From NCBI GenBank assembly GCA_040357565.1, contig JBDODJ010000124.1: DNA of 33,185 nucleotides; one strand, 5' to 3'. Within the stretch, counting starts at the first letter, position 1, and the number at the start of each line of letters is the position of its first letter. The stretch comes from Cercozoa sp. M6MM. Lineage: Eukaryota; Protista; Endomyxa: Ascetosporea. The position numbers and the translations under genes are program-made. The notes under the pieces were generated by a model, which ran no database searches, had not been told where the DNA came from, and was given only the letters and a program-made list of their open reading frames with translations. Shown one piece after another: positions 5,076 to 22,000 of this stretch.

Positions 5076-8000
5076 ATCTGTCTTAATGTCTATCTGTCCG
5101 TACAACCTAATATCTATATATATATATATATATAAATAAATATTTTAATAAATAAATATATTTATTTATTTATTTATTTTAAGTATTTTTTAATGTCTGA
5201 TAATGTATGTATTGACAGGTGGGAGTGCTGCTAGTGCCGCAGTCGCTGGCCTACGCGCAGCTGGCCGACGTGCCGCCAATCCTGGGCATGTACGCCAGCG
5301 GCTTCCCGATCATTGTGTACGCGCTGCTGTGCCACTCGCGCGTCTCGCAGTCGGGTACCGCTTTGTCCCTGTCCTGCGCCGTGCCTTCCTGTCGATATCG
5401 ATATGCCTTCCTGTCGATATTGGTGTATCTGTGTGTGTGTGTATGTGTGTGTGTATGTGTGTGTATGTGTGTGTGTGTGTATGTGTGTGTATGTGTGTGT
5501 ATGTGTGTGTGTGTATGTGTGTGTGTATGTGTGTACAGGCCCGGTGGCGCCGACGTCGCTCATGATCGCAGGTGCCATGTCGTCGCTCCTGACGGTGGAG
5601 GACGAGGACTCGCCCGAGGCCGAGACCGAGCGCACCAAGGTGGCCGCCACGGTCGCCTTCGCCACCGGTCTCATCCAGCTGTGCCTCGGCATGCTCAAAC
5701 TCGGCACTGTGGCCGCGCGACTCATGTCCTCGCCTGCCATGAATGGTATGTGTGTCTATCTATGTGTCTGTTGTCTGTGTGTCTGTGTGTCTGTGTGTGT
5801 CTGTGTATGTATGTATGTATGTGTGTATTCTTACCCCTTACCCCTACCCTCCCTCGAGCAGGTTTCACAACGGGCGCGGCCTGCGTGATTGCGAGCTCGC
5901 AGTTGAAGTACCTCTTTGGTCTCAAGGATGTCAAGAAGGGCAGCAACTTCTTCGACACTGTGGTATGTACCCCGACCCCCCCCCCCCCCGTCCTACCCTC
6001 TTAGTCCCTCCCTCCCCCTGCAGTACCAAGTGTGTAAGCGACTGGGCGATACCAACGGGTGGACGGTGCTTCTGTCGGTGTTGGCTATCGCAGCCTTGTT
6101 GTCGGTCAAGTACGCGCCGCTGAAGCACAAGGTGCCGGCGTGGTTCCCGGTGCCGCTGCTGCTCATCGTGATTTACATCCTGCTGGCCTGGCTCCTCAAT
6201 CTCGAGGATCACGGCGTCATTCTTGTCGGCGATATCCCTGTACTCTGCCTTTCCCTTTATTCCCTGACCATCTGAGCCCCTCATACCCGCGACCCTCTGA
6301 CCTCCTTTACCCCAGAGCGGTCTGCCGACGCCGGCGATGCCGGAACTCGGCAATCTGGGCGAGGCACTCGTGGCCTCGATTCCGCTGGCCATTGCGTCCT
6401 TCCTGTCCTCTGGTAGGCCCCCTCCCTTGGCTCTTTGTGACGTCCACTTGTACCGTTTGTGTCCGTAGCCGGCCTGCTGCAGGCGTTCGCGTCGCAACGC
6501 GGCGAGACGCTCCGCGCGGACACGGAACTGCGCGCCTACGGCGTGTGCCAGCTCGCCGAGAGCGTCTTTGGCGGTCTCGTTGTGTCGGCCTCCTTCTCGC
6601 GGTGTGTGGCTGTTTCTTTGCCCCCCCCCTCCGTCCCTCCCTCCCTCTCTCTGTTTGTTATCCCCATTGCCGTCTCTTTATCCCTTCTAAGCGCAGAGTG
6701 GCACTCAACAATGAGATGCGTGCGCGAACGCAAGTGGCGCAGATGGTACCGTGTCGGTGTGTACTGTATGTACCCTATGGGGAGAGAGAGAGAGGGAAGG
6801 GAGAAAGAGAGAGAGAGAGAGAGTGTGTGTGTGTGTGTGTGTGTAGGTGACGGGCACGCTGATCGTGATCGTGCTGGTGTCGCTGACGGGCGTGTTCTCG
6901 CAGCTGCCGAATGCGCTGCTGGGCGCCATGATCGTCGTCAGCGTGCGCAAACTCTTCGACTACCGCACGCCGCGCGTGCTGTGGCGGCGCGCGCACTACG
7001 CCGACCTGGTGCAGCTGTTCGGCGCCATGATCGCCACCGTCTCCTTCAGCATCGAAGTCGGCGTTATGGTACCTTTATGAGGCATACAGAAGGGGGTACA
7101 TCACACGTACATATATATGTCCATGCTATGTATTTATATATATATATATATGTGTGTGTGTAGACTGCCGTAGGTCTCGGCATGCTGCAACTGCTGATGC
7201 GTGGTGCGAAACTCGGTACCGCCTGTGTTACCCTGGCCTATCCTGCCCTCCCTTGCCTTGCCTACCTATCCTACCCTTCCTTGCCTTACCTTACCTTACC
7301 CTATCCTATCCTGCCTTGCCCTATCCCATCCTGCCTTGCCCTATCCCATCCTGCCTTGCCCTATCCCATTCTGCCTTGTCCTATCCTATCCTGCCTTGCC
7401 CTACTCTAGCCGTATTGGTCTTTCTACAGAAGTGACCGAGTTGGCACACATTGACGACACGTGGCTGTCCAAGAAAGAGTTCCCTCTGGCCTGCAGGTAG
7501 GCTAGACTCTGGCCTTTTGTCCCAGCTCGTTCCATATTCCTCCTGAGTTAGGGTGCCGAAAGTGATGGTGGTACGTCTGTCCGGCGACGCGCACTTTGCC
7601 GGTAGACCTGTTGTTTGACACGGTAATATCCAAGGTATGTGCGGCGAGGTTGCAGGTGCCGCACCTGCACTAACGCAACTGTGCGAGATGATCAAGGCTC
7701 GTTCCGAACTGCGCGCGATCGTAGCATTTGCTTGTGTGTGCATGTGTGTGCGTGTGTGTGTGTGCTTGTGTATGGTTTATATGTGTGCACGGTGTGCTTG
7801 TGTGTGTGTGTTTATGTCGGTGGTGTGCGTGTGTCGGTGTGTCAGGTGCTCGACTGGTCGCGTGTGACGTTTGTCGATTTTTCCTTCCTGCAGCGCCTGG
7901 CGCCAATCCTTGAGGTACCCCTGAAACCCCACGCGGAGCACAAAGAGTACCAGTAGAGACAAAATCTTGACGTCTGACATGTGCACAGAATGCACACACA

Positions 8001-12853: not shown

Positions 12854-13455
12854 ATGACTGATGATGTCTATCCTGTACAGATTGATAAAAATATACTGTA
12901 CTTAATCGCACTTCACCAGAAGGCCCTGGCACATTTCTTGAAGTGCTTGACGTTGTGCCTGTGCTGTATCTTCTACGGTAAGTGGACCAGGATCTTAGTT
13001 TTCCTCCTGCATGCTGGTGAAATAATAACAAATTATTGCAATACTAGATTCTGATCTTGGGAAGGCGTGTTTTGTGACAGAGTTTGTAAAAAATAACAGC
13101 GATGGGCGTTTGGAACTACAGACGAAAGGTGCGTTCGTTCTCTTCATCTGTGTGTGTGTCTGTGTGTCTGTGTGTCTGTGTCTGCGTGTGTGTGTCTGTG
13201 TGTGTGTGTCTGTGTGTGTCTGTGTGTGTCTGTGTCTGTGTCTGTGTCTGTGTCTGTGTCTGTGTGTCTGTGTGTGTGCGTGTGTCTGTGTGTGTCTGTG
13301 TGTGTGTGTGTGTGTGTGNNNNNNNNNNATGTTCTTTCTCTTCTCTTGTGTGCACTCACTCGATGATACTCACACTCCTGTCAGTGACTACTATCTCGAG
13401 TGGCTTGTTGCCGTTCTTATCTCTGCGGTACGCTTTCTCCTTCTGCCTGTGTGTG

Positions 13456-13494
<39 letters not shown>

Positions 13495-13594
13495 NNNNNN
13501 NNNNNNNNNNNNNNNNNNNNNNNNNNNNNNNNNNNNNNNNNNNNNNNNNNNNNNNNNNNNNNNNNNNNNNNNNNNNNNNNNNNNNNNNNNNNNN

Positions 13595-13657
<63 letters not shown>

Positions 13658-13884
13658 TTGTGTCTGTGTGTACTGTGTACTGTGTACTGTGTACTGTGTA
13701 CTGCGTTTGTGTGCGTGTAAAGTCCTTGCTGATCGTGGACTTTATGTTCTTCGGCACGAACGCCTTCGTGTTTGACCCGCAATATCGATCCTGGCAGACA
13801 GTGACTCATACTGACAAGGTACCAACAACCCTGGGACTGGCCAACTGGGTGTTCTTTGACTTCTCGCGTGCGCAGGTTGATTAA
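12854..13884 (+). CDS. Small (about 90 aa) putative two-TM membrane protein of unknown function; 7 tiny exons
   Basis: Frame-consistent model: MTDDVYP|[19 protein letters not shown]|DSDLGK|[10 protein letters not shown]|[14 protein letters not shown]|[32 protein letters not shown]|VD*. It needs one 35-nt GC-AG intron (13065-13099), and two introns contain assembly gaps. Confidence 0.6.
13149..13702. repeat. (GT)n/(GTGTCT)n/(TGTACTG)n tracts in two introns of the small TM gene; gaps N 13319-13328 and 13495-13594
   Basis: Directly visible. The tracts are interrupted by a short exon at about 13385-13427. Confidence 0.92.
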
Positions 13885-14343
13885 AACCGTCCCTTCCTCG
13901 CTCGTGGTTCCTCGTTCGCGAGCGCGTGTGATTAGAGTGCGATCATGATTCGATCATTCCTCGATCAGAACCGAACACCGCACGACGGGTTAGAACACGC
14001 ACACAAGGCCTGATAGTGTCACAATAAGGACCGTTCTTTCAGCTGTACCGTTTCAGGCTATACCAGCGCAGCACTGCACTGGGGGTGACGATGGCCACGT
14101 GTGCTTGAAACGACCGCTCACGTGCCAGTGATCGAATGAAACGGCTGCGTGATCGTTTCTGCCCGTTATTTCTGGAAGCGTATTGCCTGCTGTGCCTGCT
14201 GTACCGCAGCCTTCGCTTTACTGTATTATTGCGTGTCTCGCCTCTGTCTGAGTCGCCGCTCAAACCAGTGGAGTTGTTGTTTTGGGCACACCACCGGCAC
14301 AAGTCAATCCGATCACGGCGCAGTTGTTTTTTCGGCGCGCCTC

Positions 14344-16234
14344 ATGTCCACCACGGACTCGACGCGAAGTGTTTCACAAAGCTCGGATTCGCAGGTGTCG
14401 CTGCAGCCCATCAAGCCAGACAAGAAAGCGATCGCTTCCCTTCGCAAAACTGCCGGCAAATACGAGAAGCATGACGTTGAAGTCGACCGTATTGATGAGA
14501 GCGTGACTCTCTTTCGGAGGTACTACAATATTTACAGTGCTTCACCTTCTCCCTAAAGCTACTTGTGTTCTTTTGCGTGTCTTCTGCAGACGCAACCTGG
14601 GTCTGACGACGTGTTTTGCCGTGCTGCTGATCGTCGTTGTGATTCTGTGTGTGCTTTTTATTTCGGAGTCGTCGAGGCATCTCACCGCCGCCGTTGAGTT
14701 GGAGAAGTCTTTCAACGGCGCCGTGCTGGCCTACACAAACGCGTGGACGCTGCAGGCGCCGCTGTCGGCAGTGTTCGCCACCGAGGGTGCAGCACACAAC
14801 GGCACGGTGCTGCGTGGCGCCAACGTGAGCGGCAACGCCGAGGCGCGACAAGAGCTGCAGCTCGCCTACGAGCGCACGCAGCGACAGGCCGCTCTGACCG
14901 ACGACTACGCGCGCACACTTGCGGACAGCCCGGGCGCCCTCGGACAGGACGGCAGGGACTTTGCTCATTTCTGGCTCGACGTGCTGCGCCCGCAGCTTGA
15001 CCTGTACACTCCTGCCTTCGGGGTCACTAGGCGTGTGTTGTATCACTTGGAGTCTTTTTGTCTGTGACTCTAGGTGGATTGACCACAATGGGAAGGACCT
15101 CGTGGACGGCGCCCTGTCCAGCGACCTCACTGTGCGCAACAACTCAGTTTATGACTTCTACAGGTAGTTTAATGCAGAACCTCTTATCATTGTGGTGTAC
15201 TGACACACAAACCTGTGCAGCACGAATTACGTGTTCGACCCGCAAACGAGCTACCTGGCAGAGTACAAGTTCGAGGAGCTCCTGTTCATGAGGGGTGCAC
15301 GCTCCGGCATGACTCTGATGACTCGTATTCAAGGTACCCACACCCTGCTCCATGTGTGTGTCTGAAGTCTGTGGTTGAGTAGACGACAGTCAGACCGTGG
15401 CTAACCGACTGGAGGCTTCGTTGATTGCTTTGGCAGTGCTACCTGCTATTGCTGTGGTGCTGCTTGCCGTGCGTGTGTATCGGTATCACACGCACATCAA
15501 CACATGTTTACGCGTTGTATTATGTGCATATGGTAAATCAGGTGGCGACACTTGAAGCGCGACCTCGTGGCTGCAGTGAAACGCTCGCGGCACAATGTCA
15601 AACGCGCCGTAGAAGGTGTTTTCTCTTTTCTCGCCCATCGGTATCAGAGTCCGCAAGAGTGTGCATGGAGTACAGGCGGTGCCTACGGTCTCTACGTCAA
15701 GGAGGACGTGCAACGCCTTGGCCGCCATGCCGGTAGCATCACGAGCGACTCTCGTACCGACACGGACTCGGTAGCCAATGCGACTGATACTGTCGCCGAC
15801 ACTGCCACCGACACTGCCACCGACACCGACACTGCCACCGACACTGAGACAAGTACCCTACCCCGTCTTTCGCACTTACTCCGTTCCTCTTTACCCCTTA
15901 CCTCTCTTGTCCAGTGGACGAAACGCGATCCATGACTCGCGAGACGACGTCGTCTACGGACTCGTACCTCCTGTTCCCCTGTCCTAGAGACAGAGCGATC
16001 CCAGTTGGTGTGTGTAGTTCAATCTTCCAGAGCAAGACGAACAATGATCTCAACGTGGCCATTGCGCGACTGCGCCGCCGTGTGCGCATCGTCAAAACTG
16101 TCGCTGCCGTCACCACTCTCGCAACTGCTATGTGAGTCTATAGACATTCTTATATATCTATCTATCATGTTATATGTACATATCTATATCTATATGTATA
16201 AATTTATATACATAGGTTTTGGTATCACTAAATA

Positions 16235-16272
<38 letters not shown>

Positions 16273-18060
16273 TATCTATATATCTACAAGGATATATTTT
16301 CATAATATACTTAAATATGACTGTACGTGCGCAGTACCTTGGGCGTAGGCGGTGTCTCGGCCTACAGTGCGGCCGATGACCTCGCCAACATCAACGGACC
16401 CGTGTTGGTGAACCTCGAAATGATGCGCGCCTCACTCTACCGGTAGACGCCCTCTCTGTATCAAGACCTGCTATCCCTATTAGTACTCCTGATCGACCCG
16501 CAGTATCGATGGCATGCTGAGCGGCCTGGTGTCACCGGTGCTTCCGGTGGGATTGGAAGGCAACGTCACGGCGCAGCAGGAACTTACGAAACTCTCGCTG
16601 CAGCGTTCGCTGGGTCCCTTCACTTGGGTAGCTTGCCTGTTATACTTGACAGTACCCATAAAACATATACACACATATTAGATTTATACGTATAGGTATA
16701 TATACATACACCGTGTGTGTGTGTGTGAAAATGAGAGCAGGCACAAGCAACGCTGACAGACTCTGTGAAAACGGTACAGCCGCTCCTGCTGCGAGACGGC
16801 GATCCGTACCGCTTCAATCGGCAGGAGGAACTGCTGTAAGTCTGGCGCCTTTTGTTCTTGTGTTTCCATGTACTTCCATGTCATTGTTGTGTCCTCATCC
16901 AGGACGATTCTGGAGACTACGTTGCTGAACACAGTGTTTGCCGCACTGACCACTGGCGATGTCGACGCCTTTGCAGAACTCAAGTCGCCCGAGTACATTG
17001 CCGTGCGACAAGAGACGGTATTTTATCTCACCCTACTGTACCTGCCAATTTGTTCTGTACTGGTATGAATGAAACAGGAGGATCTTTTCTTGGCGATGTA
17101 CACTGGAGAAACACAGCGCATCAACAACAACGTCGACGACAACGATCAGACCGTTGCCATTGTAGCATGAGTTTTCATCTGCTTGCCCAGTTGAGATATG
17201 AGGGTTCGTGTCTAGGTTATCTCACTCGTGTCGATCGCCACGGCCATCAACATCCTCGCCGTCATCCTGGGCTATCGTGTGCAGGTACGCACTTGCTTGA
17301 CTGTGCTGAGGAAGGCAAGTCCACAAGTGTTGTTGTGCAGAGGAAACTCCTCGAGTTGGAGAATATCGCCGCCACGGAGCACGTCTGGACTCTGGACCGA
17401 CTCTTGCGAGACAAAGAGGCCGTGGAACTCTTGACGCAGTACGCCAACCAGCAGTACTCAATCGAAAACATCATGTTCCTGCGAGGTGACACATGTCATT
17501 CGTTCAGTCTACTTGCACATGTACCAGGATTGTAACGGAGTGTGACATTGTTCAGACTGGGCTGCGCTGCACATCCCGGTGCTCGGGGTGCGCGTCCATG
17601 ACGCGGAACGTTTGTACAGCAAATACGTGATGTACCACTCAGAATGGTAAACCGACCCCCCAAGTATCTTTGTTGGTGACATAGATATATACTGGTGTGG
17701 TGCGTGCGTGCAGTGAAGTCAACCTGTCCTCCATGGTTCGAAATGAATGCATCGAAAAGTTAGTGAAGTGTACCTCAGATTGCACTGTGCTTTATTTCAC
17801 TAAAATTCAATTGACGTGCCTGTTGTTGGATACGCAGGTCGAGACAGAATCGAGAAGAAATACGGCAGCCTCGAAAACGTGCCTGAAACTGTGTTGGGTA
17901 CATTGAAACTACCTGTGCTGGTCACAATTTATCTGACAACGCTATGTCGTGTGTGATGTGACTGAGTAGCCGACGACGCAGTGGCGCAACAATTGACGCG
18001 CGTGCACGATGTTGTGCTTACGCTGGTGTCGACGAACCTGTAGCAACATTTACCTGCACA

Positions 18061-18132
<72 letters not shown>

Positions 18133-18576
18133 TACATCACATACATTTTGTCTTGTCCGTTCCCTCCGTGCAGGTACGGTCCCTTCGTGCAGTCGAAGGA
18201 GTTTATGCAATGGCGCGATGCGCGTCGTGGCAACCTGTATGCTCAATTTCGCGCATAGTTGTGTCCTCAGCTGTATTGGATGTGCGCGTAGAAACAAATA
18301 TCTGCGGCTGCTGCAACGGCACGGAGGTGAAGTTCTTGATGCTCCCTCGCCTATCGCAGAAACCCAGCTTACGCGTATTGCTGAGGTATCGACCTGTCTG
18401 TTCATTCATCCGTCTCACTATTTATCTATCTACACCTATATCTATACATCTTTCTTTCTTTCTGTCTTTCTATCGATCAATCTATCGTACTTTCTATCTA
18501 TCTATCTATCTATCTCTGTTGACGAGTTCTAAATTTATATTTTGGATTGCAGGAGGATGTCGAAGCTCAGCTTTAG
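14344..18576 (+). CDS. Four-TM protein with two tandem extracellular helical sensor-like modules and a C-terminal RGS (regulator of G-protein signalling) domain; about 840 aa, about 23 exons
   Basis: RGS box after splicing: TLDRLLRDKEAVELLTQYANQQYSIENIMFLRD...AERLYSKYVMYHSECEVNLSSMVRNEC...VHDVVLTLVSTNLYGPFVQSKEF. Four hydrophobic segments are flanked by basic residues on the predicted inner side. The frame stays continuous across about 22 short introns from ATG 14344 to TAG 18574-18576. Confidence 0.85.
15757..15851 (+). repeat. Coding Asp/Thr/Ala repeat (GACACTGCCACC-like; DTATDTATDTDTATDTET)
   Basis: In frame within the cytosolic linker of the RGS protein. Confidence 0.8.
16150..16310. repeat. 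Intronic (TA)n-rich tract
   Basis: Directly visible. Confidence 0.9.
18057..18132. repeat. Intronic (CA)n; an intronic TCTA/TTTC tract follows at about 18420-18515
   Basis: Directly visible. Confidence 0.92.
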
Positions 18577-19033: not shown

Positions 19034-22000
19034 CTAATCGATTGTAAACGCAGGGTTCACGAGCACAAAGGTGGCACGCTGCTTGGAGTCCGAAAGCTTG
19101 CACTCAATGTCGCAAACGTAGCCTTCTCGCTTCGATGTTCGATACAGCGGCAACGACAGGACGGGTCCTGACTGTTGAAGGTATTTCTCCGCCTCCTTTC
19201 GCGTGACTGCACAAAGGAAGACGTCACCGACGGGCACGCGACTTGGTGTCGACGCACTCGCCTGGCGAAGACTGCCTTGCTGTATCTCACAGCCTTGGAC
19301 GAAGGCGTCGCGCACACAGAGCACACAGTTCGACACTTGTCGGGCAAGTGCAGCATCCCAGACTGCGACGAAACGCATCGACATGATGTCCTCTGGATTT
19401 GCGTCTTGCAACATCGCAGTCAGAAAGGCTTCGGGCTGGAACATCTCGGCAAACTTCTGTGGGAGTTACCAGTGAAAGAATTCCAATGAAGTGCGGAAAC
19501 TGCGAACAATTGAAGACTCAATTTTACGACAACGGACGTATCGACTTTGGGGCTTCGCGCCACGGCAGCTTCTGCGCAAGAGAGCGCGTCGCGGAGGTAC
19601 ACCGTAGGCGGCGTGTCCTCGGCGTAGTGCCAGGTGTTGTACCAGCACAACGGAATCACTCCCTCAACCAAGGCCTCCAAATCGTTGCTCATGCACTTTT
19701 CGCTACCTTCACTCAGCACGTCGTCGATTGCGCTGAGCACACGCGCGGCGGTGCGTAGTTCGGTGAGTATAAAATCTTCGTGGGCTGTCGTGCAGTCGTT
19801 TCCTCGAGCAGCACTCGTCAACGACTGGTCGACCTGCAGCAAACAAAGACACAGTGTAAATTTACAGCACAAGTGGCAGATGAAAACAAGGGTTAGCAAC
19901 CTTTTTCAGCAAGTGCCGCCGGCGCGACCAGTACTGCCGCAGTGCGTTCAAAACCGTGCTTTGTGTCGAAACATCATCGCCAGCGCGCGCGGACGGAGAA
20001 GCGATGCGATTGAGCGTTGCCACAAGTGTGTCCGTCGCACTTTCGTTGAGCTTGACGCTGGCGTTGCTCGGCAGGCCAAAGTGCCGTTGTTCTTCAGAGT
20101 CTCGCAGTTTCTCGGCAAAATGAGTGTATTCACTGATGCTGTTCGACGCAGGCAGCGGAGGAGCGTTCGTCACCAGCGGTGCACTGCCGCGCAGCACGGC
20201 AGGATTCAGAGTGGCACGTATAATCTGCTTGAGAATTGCCGTATCGTTTGGTTGGTCAATACGACCTCCGTAAACGGCCTCTCCAATCACACCCATGGCC
20301 ATCGACCAGTTGCGTGAGTTGTGCGTTATCACGCGCAAAGCGGTCTTGAAATTGCTGTCGTTGAATTCGTACGCGGTCGAAAAGCCAAGCGGCACAAAAG
20401 CACGTCGTTGCATCACGCGCGCATGAAGACACGCCGACAAGAAGGCTGCCTGCGCAGTTTGCGCTGACACCTCGCGCAGAGTCTGTTGACTTTGCATTTG
20501 TGCGAGACTCTGCGACAGAATTTCGTGCGTCGACGCTGCGTTCTGCACTACCAAACGCGCCGTTGCGAGGGCAAACAACGAAGCGGGAAGCTCGCTGTGA
20601 GGTTCGCTGGTCAAGAAGATGTAGCGTGGCCCTTGGGTGGCTCGCTTTATTTGGAGCAGCAAGGCGCACAACGAGTGCAACTCGGTCAGTCCGAGATGGA
20701 GATTCTCAATAACCACGATGTCACGTTGAGGCTCGGAGCTTTGCAGCACGCGAGATATTTCCTCAACGGACACCTTTCCCATAGGGACACGCTGTAGCCT
20801 TAGCGCCGAACCGATGTGTTGCGACAACAGTGCTCGCAGACTTTCTAGGTCTTCCGAAACGTCGACGCCCTCGTTAAAGGTCACAAGCACCATGTGGGTC
20901 TCTGCTTGACGACGAAGCGTGTCGGTGACGTACTCCATTCCAGATGCGTCCTCGAAATTCAGCTTCAGTGCAGCAGAAATGAAGTTTTGACACAATGCAA
21001 CAACCCGATCTGGCCGAATGGCTTGCATGAGCAGCAACTTCTGGGCAAAACTGAGGTCCGGAACAGCCTCCACAATGACATTGTCCGGGTGTTGCGCGTC
21101 CATTATGTCGTCGATCTACCACACAACAAGCATTCGGCATGCTCATAATCCAAACTCGGAGGGTCGTGACACCTTTTTTGCAATGACGGAGACAGAATCT
21201 TGGAGTTCAGGAAAAGAAGCTAGCAAAGCGTGCAACTTGCTTTGGTGCATCTTGGGGAAAAACGACAGATCTCTTGCCTCACTTCGCGAGTGTGTGTCGG
21301 CAAGGTTACGTCCCAGGAAGAACTCCCAGTATGCATTCGGAATCAACGTCGGCTGCACAGCTTGCACCAAGGAAAGGCCGAACACTGTGCGGTGCTGCGC
21401 AAAGACGGCAGGTGCGACGAGCTTCCACACCTCTAACACAAAAAGACGGCACATCTGTCGGATTCGCGTCTTCTTGTTGCAGTCGTTCTTCTTCAGCGAG
21501 GAGATTGCCGTGTCAACTGCTCGAAGAATCTGACTGAATGTAAACTTGTAAGAGTTGTGCAGCTGTTCGAAGCGTTGAAGTGACAGGAAGATTCGAGTTG
21601 CCATCTTCGCGAAGGGCTCAAATTCTTTCCGCTCGGCAGAAATCCTTTCGTCGGTGACTGTTATTTTGTCAAACGTCCTCTGAGTCTCGTGCGCTTGGGC
21701 ACACGTCTCTACACACAACACTCAGATATCACAGTGTTGTAAGGTACTATGTCATGGAAACTACACATTGATTACCAGTGAGCAAAGTGGAAAATTCGTC
21801 GTCTTCGAGCATAGAAGCCTTGGACTCACTCAGTGCTTGAAGCAATCGATTCTCCAAAGCCACCAATGCCACGGTGATTTCCTCTTTCTGCTGCTGTAAG
21901 CGCGTTTTCTCATTCTCCAGTTCAGGCCGCTCGATCGCCAAGGCTGCCGACAGAAACTGCTGCTCCAGCGACGTATCGGTTGGAGAGAAATCAATGACTG

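Follow-up and report, generated by a model that had tools for sequence, protein, structure and literature searches.

The 33,185-nucleotide stretch of contig JBDODJ010000124.1 (contig C124) from the Cercozoa sp. M6MM assembly GCA_040357565.1, referred to here as the window, harbors a candidate multiexon gene between positions 14344 and 18576, the predicted product of which joins four transmembrane (TM) segments and two large outside loops to a C-terminal RGS domain (regulator of G protein signaling). The source assembly comprises 23.6 Mb in 2235 contigs; GC is ~52%, and the region is one of short introns and microsatellites. An initial annotation, made from the DNA letters, had described the product as a pair of tandem chemoreceptor-like sensor modules fused to an RGS domain and had remarked that the gene escapes the open reading frame (ORF) track; across 14344 to 18576, the ORF list indeed holds fragments only. 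For the gene model, exons were joined manually on the basis of the raw sequence and its three forward frames, all splice sites being hand-chosen, and single exons, or exon pairs consisting of an exon and its counterpart in a paralogue on contig C409, served as queries in the searches and structure predictions described below.

The resulting model (Table 1) contains 19 exons between 14344 and 18258, amounting to 2523 nt, or 840 codons and a stop, with the ATG at 14344 and the TAG at 18256 to 18258. The reading frame is kept through all 18 introns, each of which is bounded by GT-AG; 14 of them are 49 to 72 nt long, the donor reads G/GTA in 16, and the acceptor is CAG in 14 and TAG in 4. Exons are richer in GC than introns (0.558 versus 0.441), and read-through would produce a stop or a frame shift in 17 of the 18 introns. 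The initial annotation had anticipated approximately 23 small exons; the count here is 19, or 21 with its C-terminal exons, in which case a donor after 18236 would lead to extra exons at 18292 to 18385 and 18553 to 18576. A second in-frame donor of exon 2 lies after 15021; the donor at 15003 is favored because an alignment with the paralogue, D(L/M)W(I/M)D, crosses the junction. Exon 6 has a possible earlier end at 15732, which would render its Thr/Asp-rich repeat intronic, and the linker exons E6 and E7 may contain further introns. Tandem in-frame acceptors (gagTAG) are present at 15378 to 15384 (15380/15383, exon 5) and at 17965 to 17971 (17967/17970, exon 18); at each site, the frame is intact with both acceptors, and the products differ by a single residue.

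Exons E14 to E19 very probably encode a genuine RGS box, as judged from profile and sequence comparisons that bear out the domain assignment made initially. E14 matched the Pfam RGS model at 13.9 bits (E 0.07 to 0.1, model positions 2 to 31), and a phmmer search with this exon against 177,635 PDB sequences returned three matches only, all of them RGS10 chains. Against a hidden Markov model (HMM) built from an alignment of eight RGS pieces from this genome, all of them Pfam positive, E14 scored 13.9 bits (positions 2 to 31), E15 2.2 bits (positions 50 to 61), and E16 3.7 bits (positions 66 to 81), scores which were reached by 0%, 0.5%, and 0.3%, respectively, of 1912 background 25-mers drawn from the window (background maximum, 5.0 bits). 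When exon pairs from this gene and the C409 paralogue were compared with the same eight-piece alignment by hhalign, E14 was assigned a probability of 85 to 92%, while E15, E16, and E19 were matched with E values of 0.005, 4e-4, and 0.04, respectively. The matched columns follow the correct order (E14, 1 to 31; E15, 52 to 65; E16, 68 to 83; E19, 112 to 121), such that four of the six exons are colinear with the RGS box, and two control exons gave no hhalign match to the RGS alignment. By eye, an RGS C-terminal motif is apparent at the E18/E19 junction, and the S-x-E-N motif (here S-I-E-N) and the Asn of EVNL are kept; a GTPase-activating protein (GAP) competence of the box is plausible.

The domain is preceded by four hydrophobic segments, three of which (TM1, TM2, and TM4) have Kyte-Doolittle (KD19) hydropathy values between 2.41 and 3.19 (Table 1), whereas TM3, which spans the E7/E8 junction, reaches ~1.65 by hand sum, compared with ~1.83 for TM3 of the C409 paralogue. 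Seven TM helices ahead of the RGS box were not found, only these four segments being detected by hydropathy and the hand sum for TM3. Of the Lys/Arg residues within ~15 residues of each TM segment, 19 lie on flanks predicted to face inward and 3 on those predicted to face outward (hand count), and this bias supports a cytosolic N-terminus, two outside loops, and a cytosolic linker and C-terminus. Loop 1 measures ~190 residues and loop 2 ~175, and the cytosolic linker between TM2 and TM3 measures ~135 to 175 residues and is basic and partly of low complexity. A TM segment, an extracytoplasmic domain, and a further TM segment with positive-inside bias hence occur twice in the chain. Hydropathy, charge bias, and the colinear paralogue agree with the proposed placement, in one gene, of an inner N-terminus, TM1, loop 1, TM2, basic linker, TM3, loop 2, TM4, and RGS domain. 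The basic clusters on which that proposal drew were recovered over the E1/E2 junction (FRRR), after TM2 (RWRHLKR), before TM3 (RLRRRVR), and after TM4 (RVQRK), as were its four sequons (Table 1) and its quoted loop segment (LLTILETT...), which lies across the E10/E11 junction. Four sequons per ~365 loop residues represent no excess over chance, and the outside loops contain no cysteine. The RGS domain had been placed ~15 residues after TM4; its closeness to the membrane holds, with the Pfam RGS match starting ~20 residues after that helix.

The same architecture is found in the C409 paralogue, located on the minus strand at ~6300 to 1900 of that contig, whose exons could be matched in order from an FRRQN-TM1 start to the RGS C-terminus through loop 1, TM2 and its WERRRRW cluster, KAKRRVR-TM3, loop 2, and TM4 with RNSRKLVRLQK. 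The two genes are ~30 to 60% identical, a short stretch of the RGS domain reaching 92%, and the most conserved parts are E18 (92%) and E19 (67%) at the RGS C-terminus. Both genes have the intron preceding the TM1 exon at an identical position and in an identical phase. In C409, an additional intron interrupts the counterpart of E14, and the E3/E4 intron is absent. The RGS exons of C409 alone gave no match to Pfam RGS. A direct exon search, a search with the C409 frame, and an E14 profile search revealed no further copies of this gene type in the genome. A shorter relative in layout was encountered on contig C255, where one 275-amino-acid open frame encodes ~107 ectodomain-like residues, a TM helix, ~20 residues, and a Pfam RGS domain (37.2 bits, E 4e-9), with no intron between the TM helix and the RGS domain; upstream, a 255-amino-acid frame contributes a first TM helix, at its start, and further ectodomain, the ~150 residues after the helix having no Pfam match. 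The C255 ectodomain has no detectable similarity to the C124 loops. Since ectodomain, TM helix, and RGS domain are combined on C255 without any splicing assumption, the fusion in C124 is credible, and a single gene is likelier than two because the C409 paralogue keeps the whole architecture and C255 carries TM helix and RGS domain in one frame. A second RGS match is present on C255 at 6012 to 6293.

Candidate targets for such a protein are encoded in the same genome, in which the Pfam G-alpha model produced 63 exon-level matches at at least 15 separate loci by our own count (examples in Table 1). More than 20 RGS loci are found beside a large G-alpha family in only 23.6 Mb. At C1223:1-1287, a 428-amino-acid open frame contains four or more hydrophobic segments and runs into an RGS start (Pfam positions 2 to 33); it looks like a seven-TM (7TM)-RGS-type gene cut by the contig end. 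The suggestion in the initial annotation that a G-alpha may be controlled without a GPCR was put too strongly, this multi-TM-RGS frame being present in the genome.

The origin of the outside loops was examined with regard to the claim that they are chemoreceptor-like, amphipathic-helical four-helix bundles arranged as tandem sensor modules. A direct genome search with exon 2, which comprises TM1 and 112 loop residues, returned no paralogue; with or without TM1, this exon matched no Pfam family at E values up to 10, and the frames holding E5, E6, and E11, the other loop and linker exons scanned, matched none at E values up to 1. These scans of exon 2 and of the E5, E6, and E11 frames accordingly contained no profile match to the 4HB_MCP, TarH, CHASE3, or HBM sensor families. 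Among PDB sequences, exon 2 had no true match (a single chance COX5b match, E 1.6), and among 1.84 billion cluster representatives it had no true homologue; three representative matches, to a GntR-repeat protein and a Bacteroidota surface protein, were rejected as noise caused by repeats or low complexity. In an ESM Atlas feature search, NIT clusters dominated (0.94 with the TM segment; 0.91 without it, a eukaryotic cluster), with 150 and 143 shared features, respectively, in relation to a benchmark in which 9 of 10 true family members share at least 170. PF08376 (NIT) has no match in the genome, and the NIT lead was left unsupported by hhalign, in which a profile of four Bacteroidota loci scored 0.1% against exon 2 in what is a low-power test.

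AlphaFold modeled exon 2 alone as three helices with low confidence (pLDDT 64.8, pTM 0.33), for which Foldseek (pdb) and VIA-align retrieved generic long helices and coiled coils only. A crude propensity profile indicated strand-like stretches in E3-E4 and E9-E12, suggestive of a mixed alpha/beta composition, and amphipathic periodicity gave no signal in the loop exons or in the RGS control exons, which renders that test powerless. The best internal pair, E2/E9, had a z score of 3.3 (p 0.014 among 40 comparisons), a weak signal, and the similarity of TM2 to TM4 is compositional; an internal duplication was not demonstrated by this single short similarity and TM composition. The chemoreceptor likeness consequently narrows to topology, in that the layout resembles a doubled two-TM sensor; neither the four-helix-bundle fold nor a duplicated origin of the modules gained support.

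We propose, with moderate confidence, that the gene encodes a polytopic protein of ~800 to 840 residues which would work as a membrane-tethered GAP for the G-alpha subunit(s) of this organism, with the loops as its input. The gene structure, hydrophobic segments, charge bias, RGS similarity, conserved paralogue, and G-alpha genes are results of the analysis; a plasma-membrane location, GAP activity, and any regulation through the loops are inferred. The RGS box, held ~20 residues under TM4, would act as a GTPase-activating protein on one or more of the many G-alpha subunits. An input, be it a ligand or a surface contact, would be received by the two outside loops and would alter GAP access via TM4 and the short tether. 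Clustering or internalization, as with plant AtRGS1, may represent an alternative route. A ligand input is suggested because of the size of the loops, their conservation in the paralogue, and the analogy with 7TM-RGS proteins (PMC9283941, PMC3386157).

Several points weigh against this proposal, and some of them simultaneously favor other explanations. The TM3 segment is only marginal in hydrophobicity, ligand binding by the loops is putative, and the gene model is a prediction from DNA letters with hand-picked splice sites. This last point leaves room for a misjoined model in which a four-TM gene is followed, head to tail, by a small RGS gene distinct from it, which is nevertheless the least probable of the explanations considered: the E13-E14 intron is phase compatible and, at 56 nt, typical for the gene, no ATG precedes the RGS match within E14, C409 keeps TM4, the basic cluster, an EHVWTLDR motif, and the RGS domain in equal order, and the TM-RGS combination in one open frame on C255 argues in the same direction. 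With regard to the domain itself, no single exon reaches the Pfam cut-off of 23.9 bits, the RGS exons other than E14 being too short for a score, C124 is not among the >20 RGS matches returned on other contigs by a scan of the genome with PF00615, where it went unlisted because the domain is spread over six exons, each of 18 to 48 residues, and E17 and E18 had no profile match (own-genome HMM for E17; hhalign for both). In the 1997 work of Tesmer et al., the G-alpha contacts of RGS4 reportedly comprised Ser85/Glu87/Asn88, Asn128, and Asp163/Ser164/Arg167; here, N, L, and P occupy the positions which, by eye, we take to be equivalent to Asp163, Ser164, and Arg167, and GAP competence is therefore not assured. 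An RGS-homology scaffold devoid of GAP activity, comparable to the RH domains of GRK, axin, and sorting nexin, would account for the subthreshold exons, the two exons without a profile match, and the altered triad of the alpha7-alpha8 face. Such a scaffold is, in our estimation, unlikely, given that the S-x-E-N motif and the catalytically important EVNL Asn are kept and that the strongest conservation between the paralogues falls in the RGS C-terminus.

Other explanations accept the domain and differ as to the membrane part. It may be a constitutive anchor which merely places the RGS domain at a membrane (e.g., flagellar or plasma), the loops being structural or glycosylated spacers without ligand input; that the loops are lineage-specific orphans, that their conservation between paralogues is no higher than that of the rest of the protein, and that RGS proteins carrying a small number of TM segments have a wide distribution, according to the survey by de Mendoza et al. 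(PMC3971589), all lend this possibility some weight. It is still rather less than even in likelihood, since two loops of 175 to 190 residues with motifs conserved in both paralogues exceed the needs of an anchor, as does an RGS domain placed within ~20 residues of the preceding TM segment at three loci (C124, C409, and C255). That the loops are instead bacterial-type four-helix-bundle or NIT-like ligand-binding modules, forming a chemoreceptor-style, single-chain pseudodimeric sensor which drives the RGS domain, is distinctly improbable. The TM-loop-TM layout that is present twice, the NIT-dominated Atlas features, the three helices drawn for exon 2, and the cysteine-free loops are in keeping with such a sensor, but the shared features fall short of 170, the Pfam and PDB sequence searches with exon 2 gave no true match, PF08376 is absent from the genome and the NIT profile fails on exon 2, and the low-confidence model, its generic long-helix matches, the strand-like propensities, and the weak duplication signal all point away from it.

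Receptor-type RGS proteins constitute a proposed route of outside sensing in organisms with self-activating G-alpha subunits and, to our knowledge, those which have been characterized all possess a 7TM core. Among such 7TM-RGS receptor GAPs, which are amply documented, are Arabidopsis AtRGS1, Naegleria fowleri Nf 7TM RGS1-4, and members from Trichomonas and the fungal class VI (GprK) (PMC9283941, PMC3386157). The C124 protein shares with these a polytopic membrane part followed by a C-terminal cytosolic RGS domain, and a presumed extracellular cue relayed to a GAP for G-alpha (PMC9283941, PMC3386157); unlike them, it has four TM segments and no GPCR-like core, two large outside loops, an extended cytosolic linker separating TM2 from TM3, and an RGS domain merely ~20 residues past the last helix. 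As set out by de Mendoza et al. 2014 (PMC3971589), most eukaryotic lineages have RGS domains joined to one or more TM segments, and protists evolved lineage-specific RGS architectures, so that the designation of a new receptor class was overstated, the C124 protein being one more RGS protein with TM segments outside the 7TM class. In the main text of PMC3971589, where TM counts come from TMHMM, we encountered no description of a four-TM form with paired ectodomains, and the literature searched yielded no 4TM-RGS or 2TM-RGS protein and no RGS domain paired with NIT, 4HB, or Cache domains. Most likely, the general kind, a TM-anchored receptor-type RGS protein, is known, and the four-TM layout with two large outside loops is new.

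With bacterial methyl-accepting chemotaxis proteins and sensor histidine kinases (4HB_MCP, TarH, NIT, CHASE3, Cache), the C124 protein has in common a TM segment, an extracytoplasmic domain of 150 to 200 residues, a second TM segment, and a membrane-near cytoplasmic output; unlike these two-TM sensors, it displays no detected sequence or profile similarity to them and no HAMP domain, its output is an RGS domain, and the module occurs twice per chain. Within the genome, it is like the C409 paralogue in being colinear over its full length with four TM segments and an RGS domain, and like C255 in its ectodomain-TM-RGS end, from which it differs in having two modules rather than one. It is conceivable, if doubtful, that these genes belong to a lineage-specific non-7TM receptor GAP family, in which tandem TM-ectodomain-TM modules, as a single-chain pseudodimer, would gate an RGS domain under TM4; such a family would represent a eukaryotic parallel to the two-TM sensor design of bacteria, wired to heterotrimeric G proteins, and, with the two-TM form on C255, part of a wider ectodomain-RGS repertoire. 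Should the membrane-tethered GAP function apply, the "receptor GAP" idea would have been reinvented on a different membrane scaffold, with four TM segments, two ectodomains, and an RGS domain ~20 residues from the membrane. Such proteins would also lend themselves to studies of how a signal from outside the cell is passed on to an RGS box.

Table 1. Predicted exons of the four-TM RGS gene in the window and selected G protein-related loci on other contigs (KD, Kyte-Doolittle hydropathy)
Feature	Position	Strand	Description
E1	14344..14519	+	Start codon (first in-frame ATG), 58-residue hydrophilic cytosolic N-terminus, ends FR plus split Arg codon; donor GTACTA
E2	14590..15003	+	RRN, TM1 (KD19 3.19), first ~112 residues of loop 1; sequons NGT, NVS
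E3	15074..15163	+	Loop 1, sequon NNS; conserved with C409 (WMDDN...)
E4	15221..15333	+	Loop 1; colinear with C409 exon VSLRNAG...
E5	15383..15482	+	End of loop 1, TM2 (KD19 2.80)
E6	15542..15852	+	Basic cluster RWRHLKR, cytosolic linker with Thr/Asp-rich repeat; no Pfam domain
E7	15915..16131	+	Linker, basic cluster RLRRRVR, first half of TM3; 42% identity to C409 4213-4121
E8	16335..16442	+	Second half of TM3, start of loop 2; mean KD ~1.65 across junction (hand sum)
E9	16504..16627	+	Loop 2, sequon NVT
E10	16741..16835	+	Loop 2; DPYRFNRQEEL motif common to C409
E11	16903..17017	+	Loop 2; segment quoted in the initial annotation
E12	17078..17161	+	End of loop 2
E13	17216..17284	+	TM4 (KD19 2.41), then YRVQ
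E14	17341..17485	+	Juxtamembrane RK..., RGS helices 1-3, S-x-E-N motif
E15	17556..17646	+	RGS middle (...AERLYSKYV...)
E16	17714..17769	+	RGS EVNL motif with conserved Asn
E17	17838..17897	+	Variable RGS segment; 39% identity to C409; no profile match
E18	17970..18039	+	RGS helix ending ...VVLTLVSTN; 92% identity to C409 over 13 residues
E19	18174..18258	+	RGS C-terminus (YGPFVQSKEF...), TAG stop 18256-18258
G-alpha locus (example)	C25:48939-49982		Pfam G-alpha
G-alpha locus (example)	C28:85818-86845		Pfam G-alpha
G-alpha locus (example)	C35:25167-26264		Pfam G-alpha
2-TM ectodomain-RGS gene	C255:10992-12475	-	Two open frames, Pfam RGS

The surroundings of the gene within the window are marked upstream by an extended (TG)n/(CA)n microsatellite tract containing N runs at 13074 to 13900, at least ~450 bp upstream of the start codon. 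Downstream, open frames on the minus strand at 19034 to 19899 converge on the 3' end of the gene, which must therefore lie before ~19000.

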